A stretch of 64,000 nucleotides of DNA from Octopus sinensis (Eukaryota). The position numbers and the translations under genes were made by a program. This document shows, in pieces, positions 17,682-59,430 of this stretch. Each line of letters opens with the position of its first letter. The stretch's first letter is position 1. The stretch spans positions 5,890,001 to 5,954,000 of the forward strand of contig NC_043007.1 in the NCBI RefSeq assembly GCF_006345805.1, given 5' to 3'. The notes under the pieces were generated by a model. It was not told the origin of the DNA and did not search any database. It saw only the letters and a program-made list of their open reading frames with translations.

Positions 17682-17789
17682 CCAAATGCAAGTCTGAAAG
17701 TAGAACATTATTTACTGGGCCTGTTTGATCCAGACGCATATAAGGAAGCTAATGTAGTCTACCCGCATTGGATTACGACACATGTTATG
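17682..17789 (+). CDS. PEBP4-like gene copy A, exon 2 (108 nt)
   Basis: ttattag|PNASLKVEHYLLGLFDPDAYKEANVVYPHWITTHVM|gtaagt. It contains the PEBP hallmark Y-x-L-x-x-x-DPDA...HW. Confidence 0.92.
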
Positions 17790-19983
17790 GTAAGTATGAT
17801 AGATATTTTTGTGAAATGTATCTTTTTATGCAGATGTGTGCATTCGTGCATGCAACTGTCAATTTTAGCACCAAAATGCATATATAATTTCACAAATTCG
17901 GACGCACCACACACATGCACACACGCATACACGCAAACAGGCATACACATTCATAGAGATGCACATATCCATACACGCAAACACACACATGCATACATAC
18001 ATATATATAGTGAAGAGATTCAAGAAATTGTTTAACTGATAAATCATACTGAATGTTGAGAAATTACACTGAAACCTGTGCTTAAACATTATGACAGAAA
18101 TCAAATATTTATGTAATTTACCGCTTTCAACACTTTTAAAAAATATTATTTCTAATTAATGATGTTGCAATAATTTCTTGATTATATAACTAGCTCTTGT
18201 CGGTGATAATGCTTTAATTTCGTATGTGGTTCGTGATAGTATCAAGGGATAGTATCAGTTAAATATTTACAGTAACGAGGGAAGCAATATATTGAATAAT
18301 TTTTTCTTTCAATTATTAACAGTAATGTATATAGGAATTGAAATTAATAAAATCTGCGTGTTTATGTGCAGTGGCTATAAATTATTGAATCTTTTCATTT
18401 ACCCGACGTTTTACATGTGTGTCTGTGTATAGTAAAATAGGAAACGTGTAACATCTATAATATGCATGTATAATATTTTTTTTATTTAATATCGTTGTTT
18501 CTGTAATGAGCTTTATCGTAAGTTTTTCTATATAATTATTTTAGATATACTTTAAGTTATTAGATATTTACTTAAGCGTTTATTCTAGATATTTTACTTA
18601 TAGCGATATAGATATGATTCCCATTGATAAATATTTTATAGTATGAAGTTAGGTTTATGTATATACATTTATTATGCATAATTGTCGTTTTAAATTTTCT
18701 TAAATTATTATTTTAACTTATCTATTGTCTTTTAAATTGATATTTGTAGATTTAGATTCCCAGTGATAAATTATTTTATAGTATTTATTGATACGATAAA
18801 CTACGATGATTATTTCTTTATGTAACTTAAATATAAGATTTCTGAAAGTTATTATTAGACATGAAGATATACAGATAGTTAATTTGATATAGCGTAAGTT
18901 TAAGATGGGTTGTTTGTATTTTGAAATACTATTCCATCTTTAAATATGAAAAATTAATTTATTAGGTCTTTATTATATGTGCATATATATATTTATAGAG
19001 ATTATTTTAGATCTTAATTAAAATTTTTATACACATTTATCTATTTTCATTGATAATTTGTATATCATTTGAATTTTATATTTTTAATAATATAATAGTT
19101 CTTTTGTAAAATATTTATGTAATTAGATATTGACTATTACTGATATTAGATTATTGGTGGGTTTCTTACCATAAAAATTAATACTTAAAAATTAATATTA
19201 ATTAATATTTAACATTATAATTGATGTTTTGATATAATCATAATCGTTAAGTTTCTAGTTTGATAATAGAGTATTTTATTAGTAAAATTATTATAATATT
19301 TATTTCTTAAAAATATTGTTTAAATATTTCTCATTACTTATTGAAATATTACAATTAACCTGAATATTGACTATAACCATAATTCGAATTAATAATTGAA
19401 TTAAAATTATTGTTATTCGAATTCGTTACGGGCATGAAACGATCGTAGTGTTTTTACTATTTATCTTATATTAAACAGTTAATACTTTTTGATAGTTATA
19501 TAATTTACAAAAATAAAATAAAATAAAATAAAATAAATAATAATAATAAAAAAATATATATATATATTTAAAATTTATAAGTTTAAATTCTTTAAATAAT
19601 TTTTAAAATTTTAACTTTAATTTATATATTTTAAGTTGGAATTTAATATTTTATATTTTTTATATCTATAATTTATATTTTTTTAATTAATTTTTTTTCT
19701 ATGTATTGGCTTATGATTTTAACTATTTGATTTGCCTAATGGTGGTTTTATCTCTAATTAAAAAAATTTATATATATATATATATATATTATATATATAT
19801 ATATACTTTGATACTTTGATAGGTTTCGGCCATTATTGGCCCAGGCCATGTCTAACTTAATAGCACCACCTGGTGAAGTATATTTACCACTTAAATGTGG
19901 CTAACCCCTATGGGTGGATGCTACTATAGCTCGTCCAGCTGGCTATTGACGCACTTTCTGTGAGATTTATGATTATTATTATT

Positions 19984-22900
19984 CAGTAGTTTTATTTTTA
20001 TAGCGTGCTTTCACTTCACTACCGAGCGCAGCTCTGTGTGCCTTGGGTATGTGCTGTGATTTGTTGTGATGCTCTGATGGTTATTGTATGGAAAGTGTTC
20101 TGCGTAGGATGTGTGCAGTGCCTAGTAGTGCAATTTTCTGTATGTTATATGTGTTTGTAAGTCCTGGTGTTTTTGTTATGTATTTGTCTGAATATTTTTT
20201 ATCATGCCTAATGCACCTACTATGATAGGAATTGTTTCAGTTTTCAGGTTCCACATTCTAGTTATCTCTATTTCCAGGTCTTTGTATTTTGAGAGTTTCT
20301 CCATTTCTTTTAGAGACACGTTGTCATCTGCCGTATTGATACATCAATTAGAAAGCATTTTTTTCTTCATGATCTCTGACAACTATATCTGGTCTGTTGG
20401 CCTTAATTTCTTTATCTGTGTGTATCGGCATATCCCAGAGTATGGTTGCTTTCTCGTTTTCTGTGACCTTTTCTGGTGTGTGCCTATAACATCTTTTTTC
20501 TGTTGTTATTCCATAATGTTGGCATAGCTTCCAATGTATGTAGGTTCCAACTCTGTCATGTCTGTGAATATATTCCTTCTTAGCCAGGACTGGGCAGCTA
20601 GAGATAATATGATTTATTGTTTCTTGTCCATCTCCACATATTCTGCAGTTACTTGTAATATTTCTTTTCACTACATGTTTTTGGTAATTTCTGGTGGGGA
20701 GGCTTTGGTCTTGTGCTGCAATTAAAAATCCCTCTGTTTCTGCTTTGAGTCCTGAGCTTCTCAACCATTGCTGGGATTTTTCTTTGTCTATTTCTTTTGC
20801 GTTTAGTTTAGTGCAGTATTTACCATGAAGGGGCTTTTCTTGCCATCGTTTTATCATGGCTCGTTGCTGTTCTAATTTTATTTCGGATTTCATTTGTTTT
20901 ATAGCTTTTGTTGTTTCTTCATCATCTTCTTCTTCTTTATGTTTTTTAGGTGGTATGATTTCTTGTTTGTATTTGTCAGCTTCCTTAAATACTGAGAACA
21001 GTTTTTTGTTTTGCTCGTGTTTTGCTGCTATCTGGATCAGTTTTCATTCCTTCTGAAGTAGGTATTTTTTGCAGTCCTATGGTGGTTATTTTATAGTAGT
21101 TTTCCCAGCTGTATAAGGCCTCTACCACCTTCTATACGTTGTATATATAGTCTTTCTATGTCAGATTTTGGGTGATGCATCCTAGATCCTGTCAGTATTT
21201 TCTTGTTTTCCTATCTATTTTGGACAGTTCATTTCGTGTCCAGTTAAGGATATTGTAGCTGTAACTTATAACTGGGACAGCTAAAGTGTTGATATCTATT
21301 ATCTTGTTTTTAGCATTGAGCTCTGTTTTTTAGTATTGATCTAACTCGTCTATAATATTCTTTTTTTATTTTCTCTTTCATTTGTGTGTGTTGTGTCTTA
21401 TCTAGTTCATGGATTCCTAAGTATTTGTAAGTTTGGCTTTGGTCTAATTCTTTTATTTCATTTGTTTTATCTAGTGTGATGTTGTTACTCTTAACTAGTT
21501 TTCCTCTTTTCATGGTTACTTTGGCGCATTTTTCTAATCCAAATTTCATATCTATTTCTTTGGTAAATCCATGAACTCTCATTAATAGTGTTTCCAGCTG
21601 TTTGTCATTTGCAGCGTATAGTTTTAGGTCATCCATATATAAAAGGTGGCTGATCGTTTTACCGTAACATTTATATCCGCATCCAGTTCTATTTAGCATA
21701 TCAGATAGAGGTGACAGTGCCAAGCAGAAAAGGAGTGGAGAGAGCGTGTCTCCCTGGAATATTCCTCTTCTAATGGGGATGTCTTTGGTTTTCATGAGTC
21801 CCTCTTTTGTTTGGAGGTGTAGGACTGTTTGCCATTTATTCATAGAGTGCTCTATGAATTTTATGATTGTTGGTGCTACTTTGTTAATGGCTAGTGTTTC
21901 GAGGATCCATGTGTGGGGGATGCTATCAAACGCCTTCTTGTAGTCAATCCAGGCCATACTGAGGCCTTTCTTCTTTCTGTGGCTGTCTTCAGTTATGGCT
22001 TTATTAATCATTAGTTGATCTTTACAGCCATATGAGCCCTTGCGGCATCCTTTCTGCTCTTCTGGGAACAGTTTGTTTTCGTCCAGGTGCTTGTTCAGCC
22101 TTTGCGCTATCACTGCAGTGAATGCCTTGAACATAGTAGGGAGGCATGTTATTGGTCTGTAGTTTTCTGGTTTTGTTGTTTCATTTGATTTGGGAATTAA
22201 GATGGTTTTCCCCTTCGTGAGCCATTCAGGCATTGTCTCTGGCTCTGCTAGTATGCTGTTAAAGTTTTCAGCCAGCTTTTTGTGCATTCCTGTTAGATAT
22301 TTCAACCAGAAGTTGGGGATCTTGTCATGCCCAGGTGCCTTCCAGTTGCTTAGTTTTTGCAGTGCCTGGGTGACCTCTTCAGTTGTTATGGGGGTCCAAA
22401 GTTGTTCAGATGCCGAGTTTGTTATTTTCATACTCCTTTTGTTTGGCTGTTCGTTCGCCGACCATATTTCTTTCCAGAATTCTTCCAATTCTTCTGCCGT
22501 TGGTGCTGCAGTAACTTCTATTTTATTTTTGCCCAGTTCTTGGTAGAACTTTTTGGGGTCGGAGTTGAACTTTTTGTTCTGTTCAAAGAAGCGTTGGCGT
22601 TTCTCGCACCGGCGGATCCTTTGAGCTTTGGCAAGGATATCTTGCTTCAGCTTTTCTTTTATCTCCGGCAAATCTTTTCTGTGATGTTATATTTGCGGAG
22701 CATTTTTGTTCTCTTTTGTTGCTCAGTAGCGTTGCTTGTTTGCTGATTTCATTAAGAATCGACAGGTCTTTTCTAATTTTTTTATTTTGTTTTGGATGTT
22801 ATTTATCCACAGGGTTTGTTTGGGTGGTGGTACTCCTGTTTGGGCGGGTTTGGGTGAGTATCCAGCTTCTTTTGTGGCTGCAGTGGCTGCTGCGTATATC

Positions 22901-59200: not shown

Positions 59201-59322
59201 TGATATATATATATATATATATATGCGCATGCCAAATTCCTAATATGTTCACGTGTGTGTATGTATGATTTAATATAATAAATTCCTCCTAATGTAAAAA
59301 AAAAACTTTTGTGTTTTATTAG

Positions 59323-59430
59323 CTAAATGCAAGTCTGAACGAAACATTATATATACTGGGCATGTTTCATCAAGAGGCATATAAGGAAGCTAATATAGTT
59401 TACACGCATTGGATGAGGACATTTATCGGG
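59323..59430 (+). CDS. PEBP4-like gene copy C, exon 2 (exons 3-4 lie beyond the window)
   Basis: ttattag|LNASLNETLYILGMFHQEAYKEANIVYTHWMRTFIG|gtaagt. Confidence 0.88.

Follow-up and report, generated by a model that had tools for sequence, protein, structure and literature searches.

Probable post-duplication diversification of the mature domain in a tandem array of predicted PEBP-fold genes of Octopus sinensis

An accelerated pattern of evolution is shared by snake PLA2, conotoxin and defensin genes, and the Ly49/KIR and Ly6-type families are diversified glycosylphosphatidylinositol (GPI)-anchored or surface receptors under diversifying selection. The PEBP family includes secreted members, such as Drosophila antennal protein A5, nematode Ov-16/TES-26 and mammalian PEBP4, which have a signal peptide and extracellular roles, and an external loop encoded by exon 4 is said to distinguish FT from TFL1 among the plant PEBPs. 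The accelerated pattern is also seen in the snake three-finger toxins, where a conserved signal and conserved introns accompany a hypervariable mature region and segments of exons are switched (ASSET; PMC2474615), and secreted PEBPs are listed among fungal effectors and tsetse seminal-fluid proteins (PMC3253089, PMC4742874). Here we describe a window of 64,000 nucleotides from Octopus sinensis (contig C11:5,890,001-5,954,000), which is part of an unannotated tandem gene array, and we consider it quite probable that this array consists of nine genes for secreted PEBP-fold proteins whose mature domain was diversified by selection after duplication.

Divergence and selection among the copies

The window contains 3.5 tandem units of 17-23 kb with 93-98 % identity in self-BLAST; the units were defined by self-BLAST together with a sliding-window comparison of one unit with another. 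Its DNA is eukaryotic in character, AT-rich and microsatellite-rich, with GT-AG introns and debris of long interspersed nuclear elements (LINEs) and of Tc1/mariner elements. The whole cluster occupies C11 5.825-6.035 Mb and has nine genes (g1-g9), seven on the plus strand and two on the minus strand, with g4 (copy 0; exons 3-4 only), g5 (copy A; complete), g6 (copy B; complete) and g7 (copy C; exons 1-2 only) in the window. In sliding windows, peaks of divergence stand sharply above a background of 0-3 per 50 nt and match four plus-strand coding exons, whose AG/GT boundaries are conserved and whose phases are 0, 0 and 1 in all nine genes. Each gene has four coding exons over about 22 kb and a product of about 210 amino acids: exon 1 (195 nt) encodes the signal peptide and a segment with a pair of cysteines, exon 2 has 108 nt, exon 3 has 49 or 52 nt, and exon 4, of about 270-293 nt, ends with a hydrophobic tail and the stop. 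The first exon of the next gene begins about 1.4 kb past the preceding stop. Exon 4, which an earlier note on this DNA had missed, is likewise hypervariable; a single frame is open in all of its copies and its indels are multiples of 3.

The earlier note had proposed that the exons diverge far more than the adjacent introns, almost entirely non-synonymously, and our recounts agree with its figures. Exon 2 differs between copies A (17682-17789) and C (59323-59430) at 24 of 108 nt and at 17 of 36 amino acids, with only one purely synonymous codon (GTC/GTT; synonymous differences Sd 2.8, non-synonymous differences Nd 21.2), and the adjoining intron sequences have 3 differences in the 100 nt after the exon and 4 in the 100 nt before it. 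Exon 1 has 13 changes in 65 amino acids between the same two copies, the sole change in the signal peptide being R8I, and exon 3 of copy 0 (52 nt) differs from that of copy A (49 nt) by 14 substitutions and a 3-nt indel. That nearly all changes are non-synonymous is true of exon 2 in A and C; in general, the synonymous divergence (dS) of the exons is also estimated to be somewhat above the intron divergence (K). With all copies aligned, we find a ratio of non-synonymous to synonymous divergence (dN/dS) above 1 and introns less diverged than exons.

Whole-intron K is 0.029-0.048 among the five young copies g3-g7, with 7-13 kb compared per pair through pairwise high-scoring segment pairs (HSPs), and the mature-domain exons of these copies have 0.12-0.23 differences per nt. 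Single mature-domain exons are mostly 12-41 % different, a level reached by few or no non-coding windows of 100 nt; these have a mean of 2.4-4.3 mismatches and a 95th percentile of 6-11 in HSP-based pairwise alignments of whole units. This contrast between exons and introns is more than chance, and neither the signal peptide (codons 1-23) nor the last 29 codons are accelerated. A nine-gene MAFFT alignment of 600-nt flanks inflated intron K through the forced alignment of microsatellites and transposon insertions, and it was replaced by the pairwise HSP estimates; the 150-nt exon flanks carry TA/CA repeats and have mismatch rates above the whole-intron ones.

Four-fold sites pooled over the young pairs differ at about 20 of 472 positions (0.042), which is near intron K. 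Estimates of exon dS by the Nei-Gojobori method (NG86) and by maximum likelihood are 0.07-0.21, above intron K, and we attribute this excess to multi-hit codons, to exchange of exon segments with older paralogues and to homogenisation of the introns, in unpartitioned shares. The non-synonymous divergence, dN, is 0.13-0.25, or 3-6 times neutral by the yardsticks of four-fold sites, introns and orthologue silent sites.

Positive selection on the mature domain, which the earlier note had put forward, is supported by independent tests, NG86 and likelihood comparisons (M0, M1a/M2a, M7/M8 and per-exon tests). By NG86, dN/dS of the mature domain is at least 1.0 in 36 of 36 paralogue pairs (range 1.00-2.25), and that of the signal peptide is 0.24 or less. 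The codon models (M0, M1a, M2a, M7, M8 and M8a) were fitted with our own GY94+F3x4 likelihood code, which was validated for M0 against IQ-TREE (-3599.15 with both), and codons of g1, g2 and g6 affected by a frameshift or a stop were treated as missing data, without repair. The gene-wide M0 omega of 1.48 is significantly above 1 by a likelihood ratio test (LRT; p = 3.6e-4), and so is that of the mature domain, at 1.62 (p = 7e-5). Comparison of M1a with M2a gives twice the difference in log-likelihood (2dlnL) as 98.2 (p = 5e-22), with 31.5 % of codons at omega = 4.1 and 24 sites with a posterior above 0.95 under M2a; the comparison of M7 with M8, suggested earlier as a check, gives 2dlnL = 101.9 (p = 8e-23), and that of M8a with M8 gives 2dlnL = 98.0. 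Because the copies are mosaics, M1a/M2a was repeated for each exon segment on its own tree, with p = 3.5e-5 for exon 1, p = 1e-8 for exons 2+3 and p = 2e-8 for exon 4. The same comparison gives p = 2e-13 with intact genes only and p = 2.5e-16 with young copies only.

No site with a posterior above 0.95 is in the signal peptide or the tail. On the secondary structure of a model of the g9 orthologue (see below), the selected sites fall on 12 of 52 loop residues, 1 of 34 strand residues and 3 of 19 helix residues. They are concentrated in the exon 3 loop between HW and GxHR, at the x of GxHR and in the loop after LLYPQ, elements that border the ligand pocket in PEBPs; the hypervariable loop after LLYPQ presumably corresponds in position to the exon 4 external loop of FT/TFL1.

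Orthologues in Octopus vulgaris place this selection in time. Two loci of that species (L022 and L023, on OX597824.1) contain g1, g2, g3, exon 1 of g4, g8 and g9 in conserved order, with g1, g3, g8 and g9 intact; the stop in g2 is common to both species, and the frameshift in O. sinensis g1 is either specific to that species or an assembly error. Pooled over the four intact pairs, orthologue pN/pS is 0.37 (Fisher p = 0.027), and orthologous exons are less diverged than introns (0.0099 against 0.0153, p = 0.03). The genes are functional and currently constrained, with purifying selection between the two Octopus species, and the burst of amino-acid change therefore lies on the paralogue branches, after duplication. 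Silent sites of orthologous exons have diverged by 0.0196, about 1.3 times the intron value of 0.0153, and this near-equality argues against hypermutation directed at exons. The selection is thus post-duplication or episodic, and not a demonstrably ongoing arms race.

Predicted fold and surface features

The motifs DPDxP...HW in exon 2 and GxHRYxFLLYxQ in exon 4 were the first pointers to PEBP. A profile of exon 2 matches only Hd3a and FT (residues 65-95, E = 0.002), a profile of exon 4 matches only PEBPs (CEN, residues 113-161, E = 0.002; Drosophila CG7054, TFL1, FT, Hd3a and CPY inhibitor), and the matches of the two profiles are at colinear positions in PEBP. When the Pfam PBP model (PF01161, gathering score 24 bits) was run on the genome, it matched exon 4 of g1 and exons 2 and 4 of more distant paralogues on contigs C8 and C9. 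Exon 4 of g1 (20.7 bits) and the O. vulgaris predicted protein P0005, which is the g9 orthologue (20.0 bits), are below the cut-off, and four relatives found with the exon-4 profile are above it (P0008, 24.4 bits; P0014, 33 bits; P0010, 38.9 bits; P0011, 60.4 bits); these come from O. sinensis, O. bimaculoides and Argonauta hians, and two are labelled PEBP in UniRef. Pfam searches with single exons of the window copies gave no match.

Copies g1 (VDPDEYP...HW), g8 and g9 and the C8/C9 paralogues have the first PEBP signature in canonical or near-canonical form, and it is eroded in the window copies (DPDAYK in g5, HPEAYK in g4 and HQEAYK in g7), where HW is retained. The second is strict in g1, g8 and g9 (G.HRYQFLLYPQ) and reads GHNRYQLLLYPQ in g5 and G.(S/N)HFQFLLYPQ in g4, g6 and g7. 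Residues of the canonical pocket (DPDxP, GxHRY) are replaced in the young copies, D by H, P by K and HRY by NHF or SHF, which makes binding of the classical ligand doubtful. An AlphaFold2 model of P0005 (exons 2-4) has a mean predicted local distance difference test score (pLDDT) of 81.6, and about 90 within the fold, and its top Foldseek matches are all of PEBP fold, with probability 0.9-1.0 and TMq 0.46-0.57 (mL38, CEN, FT, TFL1 and PEBP1). Because the window copies fall under the Pfam cut-off and the canonical pocket residues are replaced, we class their predicted products as divergent members of the PEBP fold and not as classical PEBPs.

The signal peptide is conserved, with an h-region ILLLSCMVF followed by SLA, as are two cysteines, and an N-x-S/T sequon at residue 67 is present in every intact gene and lost in the g2 and g6 pseudogenes. 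All copies have a C-terminal tail in which small residues and a polar spacer precede 14-15 hydrophobic residues (mean Kyte-Doolittle 1.4-2.4) that end the protein. The copies thereby combine the sequence features of GPI-type proteins, namely an N-terminal signal peptide, small residues for the omega site, a spacer and a hydrophobic end with no cytosolic tail, and the proteins probably pass through the secretory pathway to the cell surface, where a GPI anchor would hold them.

The more distant paralogues, at C8:41.41-41.51 Mb and C9:89.335-89.345 Mb (L017-L020), share the exon structure of the array, including a signal-peptide exon (38-49 % identity), and carry canonical PEBP motifs. Relatives are also present in O. 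bimaculoides and Argonauta hians, and the secreted-PEBP subfamily is therefore older than the C11 array and extends at least across the octopods.

Exon exchange and rival explanations

Trees of the separate exons are discordant. The exon 1 tree groups g2 with g8, g3 with g7 and g4 with g5; that of exons 2+3 groups g4 with g7, joined by g3, and g5 with g6; and that of exon 4 groups g3 with g4 and g6 with g7. Between g6 and g7, exon 4 has 1 difference in 197 nt, exon 2 has 25 in 108 and exon 3 has 19 in 49, and the near-identity of exon 4 points to a recent exchange. By the four-gamete criterion, incompatibility rises from 20 % within exons to 59 % between them. There are 133 variable sites among the young copies, 57 of them shared in exon-specific patterns and 76 gene-specific; of the gene-specific variants, 47 are new and the other 29 are present in older paralogues too. 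Exon 3 of O. vulgaris g9 (L023:13537-13585) is identical to that of O. sinensis g1, and exon 3 of O. sinensis g9 (genome 6026150-6026198) has three clustered changes of the g8 type, which mark a short-tract conversion between paralogues within the exon after the species split.

Non-coding divergence is over-dispersed, with a variance/mean ratio of 2.4-7.5 and zero-difference windows at 5-9 times the Poisson expectation, and copies share identical runs of up to 550 nt, the longest of which exceed simulated maxima. In the region of the promoter, exon 1 and intron 1 (9137..10855), such tracts extend for 539 nt from 9137 (g5-g6) and for 550 nt from 10306 (g5-g7). Perfectly identical tracts of 420-550 nt are found at 10306-10855, 9137-9675 and 33640-34060 in copies that otherwise differ by about 3 %, and two parts of intron 1, at about 10.3-11.5 kb and 13.3-14.9 kb, hardly vary among A, B and C. 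These tracts point to recent gene conversion or perhaps to a constrained element. Given the discordant exon trees, the incompatibility, the novel variants, the over-dispersed introns and the g9 conversion, new substitutions, exon shuffling and intron homogenisation are jointly at work, and the latter two enlarge the contrast between exons and introns in part.

How far such exchange could by itself account for the pattern was weighed against selection on the mature domain. Under concerted evolution the exon lineages would be old, conversion and unequal crossing-over would have erased the divergence of the introns, and selection would only have blocked homogenisation of the exons, with no real acceleration of amino-acid change. 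This is what the over-dispersion of 2.4-7.5, the 5-9 times excess of zero-difference windows and the 550-nt identical runs would lead one to expect; NG86 exon dS is 2-5 times intron K, exon 'types' are common to older paralogues, 29 of the 76 singletons pre-exist in old copies, and exon 3 of g9 has been converted since speciation. The four-fold sites of the exons (about 0.042), however, match intron K and show no sign of greater age, dN exceeds dS within the exons independently of the introns, and 47 of the 76 gene-specific variants are novel. Concerted evolution would still require selection for diversity, so that it complements the explanation by selection and does not replace it, and as a full account we regard it as possible but doubtful. 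Much less credible is that the copies are redundant and drift under relaxed constraint towards decay, with omega of about 1 reflecting neutrality. Lesions in 3 of 9 copies (a frameshift in g1, the stop in g2 shared with O. vulgaris and a frameshift in g6), several NG86 ratios of about 1.0 and the erosion of the canonical pocket motifs in g3-g7 could be read in this way, but omega is significantly above 1, with about 32 % of sites near omega 4, and neutral exons cannot outpace their own introns 4-6 times. Moreover, six open reading frames (ORFs) of about 210 codons have stayed open at 30-45 % amino-acid divergence with indels in multiples of 3, the cysteines, glycosylation site, signal peptide and tail are conserved, and the orthologue pN/pS of 0.37 speaks against drift as well.

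A raised mutation rate in the coding exons, through hypermutation or error-prone repair as was once proposed for conotoxin genes, would explain why the limits of divergence coincide so sharply with those of the exons and why exon dS estimates are somewhat elevated. In the orthologue comparison, though, exons have diverged less than introns (0.0099 < 0.0153) and silent sites only about 1.3 times as fast as introns, four-fold sites among the paralogues match the intron rate, and the codons of the signal peptide and tail, which are in the same exons, are not accelerated. The orthologue comparison largely refutes this mechanism, and we give it almost no credence.

Several observations weigh against selection on a secreted PEBP-fold domain or limit its strength. 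NG86 omega is just 1.0-1.3 in many pairs, and the strength of the selection depends on the neutral yardstick; since exon dS exceeds intron K, the contrast partly reflects older exon lineages, exchange of exon segments and intron homogenisation and is not pure acceleration. Recombination can inflate LRTs of site models, which the per-exon trees mitigate but do not eliminate. One third of the copies (3/9) carry lesions. The window copies, scored as single exons, are below the Pfam PBP threshold and are without strict DPDxP/GxHR motifs, the folded model is of the O. vulgaris g9 orthologue without exon 1, and not of a window gene, with PEBP-positive relatives in its multiple sequence alignment, and the GPI anchor is predicted from sequence features only.

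We nevertheless favour selection after duplication, acting together with exchange. After each duplication, selection would favour new binding surfaces on a stable scaffold, through neofunctionalisation or diversification, and each copy, once established, would be maintained. Copies swap whole exons by recombination in the long introns, and gene conversion homogenises tracts of intron.

Layout of the locus and relation to described families

The exons of g4 are divided by the edge of the window. Exons 1 and 2 are upstream of it (genome 5875039-5875233 and 5884490-5884597); exon 3 (1755..1806, plus strand) has 52 nt with conserved AG/GT, a length of 1 mod 3 that fits a last exon of phase 1, and exon 4 with the stop (7997..8289, plus strand) covers the second PEBP motif region, the variable loop and the conserved hydrophobic C-terminal tail. 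In g5, all on the plus strand, exon 1 (9690..9884) encodes the signal peptide (codons 1-23) and the N-terminal part of the mature protein, in which two cysteines are conserved, exon 2 (17682..17789) carries the first PEBP motif region (DPDxY...HW) as well as the sequon for N-glycosylation, exon 3 (28866..28914; 49 nt) has the highest density of selected sites of all exons, and the terminal exon 4 extends to the stop (31097..31368). Exon 1 of g6 (32721..32914, plus strand) has a 1-nt deletion, with a shifted frame and a premature stop as the result, and exon 2 (41083..41190, plus strand) has lost the sequon; these are followed on the same strand by exon 3 (45810..45858) and exon 4 with the stop (48120..48406), and g6 is either a pseudogene or the product of an assembly error. 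For g7, exon 1 (50060..50254) and exon 2 (59323..59430) are on the plus strand of the window, and exons 3 and 4 lie beyond it (genome 5954826-5954877 and 5956778-5957061). Over the whole cluster six of the nine genes are intact, the damaged ones being g1 (frameshift before the tail), g2 (in-frame TAA) and g6 (exon 1 frameshift). The O. vulgaris prediction P0005 splices exons 2-3-4 exactly as in our gene model.

A search for a hidden exon in 1-1740, 24656-26430 and 43322-45245 found none in these segments, and a hot spot of divergence at 6046-6150 was rejected as an exon, being a (TTA/TCA/GTA)n microsatellite. This trinucleotide repeat of intron 3 (6002-6150, 29092-29240 and 46033-46180) differs in internal composition from copy to copy. 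It can be mistaken for a hot spot of divergence and has a long open frame in translation, which makes it a trap for exon calling. A 57-amino-acid open frame in intron 1 (10921-11094, plus strand) is kept in all copies and forms the terminal exon of P0003 in the O. vulgaris annotation; no Pfam family matches it, and it probably derives from a repeat.

The window genes g4-g7 were not found in public protein databases, and a word-index protein search with exon 4 gave no match. Public gene models across the array are chimeric in O. sinensis (C11 5.825-5.858 Mb) and in O. vulgaris (L022, L023). LOC118765305 of O. sinensis (P0002) combines exon 1 of g1 with exons 2-3 of the pseudogene g2 and an unrelated end, P0003 of O. 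vulgaris joins exons 1 and 2 of g1 to exon 2 of g2 and the intronic ORF, and P0009 joins g9 to g8.

The introns also contain transposons and satellites. A non-LTR retrotransposon of 3.85 kb is present in two copies on the minus strand (2028-5874 and 19967-23813), which are 97.6 % identical and encode an open 458-amino-acid reverse transcriptase (RVT_1, E = 3e-32) and a zf-RVT domain. The two occupy different introns, intron 3 of g4 and intron 2 of g5, and are therefore recent, independent insertions of an apparently young LINE. Directly upstream of exon 3 is a (CATA)n-derived satellite (26321-28850 and 45135-45766) whose strands are extremely asymmetric (GC skew -0.78) and whose length varies strongly between copies, from about 2.5 kb in g5 to about 0.6 kb in g6. 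A Tc1/mariner-type element with the helix-turn-helix N-terminus of a transposase (59642-61259) is found only in intron 2 of g7, and remnants of an older Tc3-type transposase (25089-26082, minus strand; HTH_Tnp_Tc3_2, E = 5e-11) are common to all units.

Our best guess at the role of the array, held with low confidence, is a repertoire of extracellular proteins that bind or inhibit a variety of external ligands, which might be proteases of pathogens or prey, or other surface molecules. A more specific proposal, which we think rather unlikely, is that the array is a cephalopod-specific repertoire of GPI-anchored, hypervariable PEBP-fold recognition proteins acting in non-self or pathogen recognition, gamete recognition or cell-cell contact, with specificities arising by exon shuffling among tandem copies together with positive selection on the loops of the pocket rim. 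If true, an invertebrate would have a diversified receptor family built on a new scaffold, and as surface recognition molecules or protease inhibitors the proteins would be candidates in the biology of octopus immunity, feeding or reproduction. Whatever its role, the array is a well-supported cephalopod case of gene-wide omega above 1, and the locus separates processes that are usually confounded (positive selection after duplication, exon shuffling and intron homogenisation), with orthologues of a sister species for calibration. The family is effectively undescribed, the window genes being absent from protein sets and the neighbouring models chimeric. Literature searches turned up no secreted PEBP reported to have a GPI-type tail, to form a tandem hypervariable array or to be under positive selection, nothing relevant linking PEBP to octopus or cephalopods or concerning LOC118765305, and nothing on expression of the array genes in venom, immune or reproductive tissue.

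Compared with PEBP/RKIP proteins (PF01161; mammalian PEBP1, plant FT/TFL1/CEN, yeast Tfs1 and mitoribosomal mL38), the octopus proteins have a similar predicted fold and colinear signature regions, which are eroded in the window copies. Classical PEBPs, however, are cytosolic, single- or few-copy and conserved, whereas the octopus genes form a tandem array with omega above 1, and their products add a signal peptide, an N-terminal extension with a cysteine pair, an N-glycosylation site and a tail like a GPI signal. The secreted PEBPs likewise have both this fold and a signal peptide. The PEBP scaffold has no known earlier association with diversifying selection, with secretion with a GPI-like tail or with tandem amplification.

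In its mode of evolution the array resembles the ASSET-type toxins, with tandem duplicates, a conserved signal peptide and conserved introns, hypervariable exons for the mature part, dN above dS and 'switched' exon segments. It differs from them in its scaffold, which is a PEBP fold and not a small disulphide-rich peptide, and in the purifying selection that currently acts on the octopus orthologues, and the tail resembling a membrane anchor argues against a soluble venom component. With the Ly49/KIR and Ly6-type families it shares conserved targeting signals at the ends, a variable ectodomain, birth-and-death evolution with pseudogenes and exchange between paralogues, although the PEBP fold is unrelated to theirs. 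The evolutionary pattern is therefore of a known kind, with precedents in venom, immune and reproductive families; the family itself is new.

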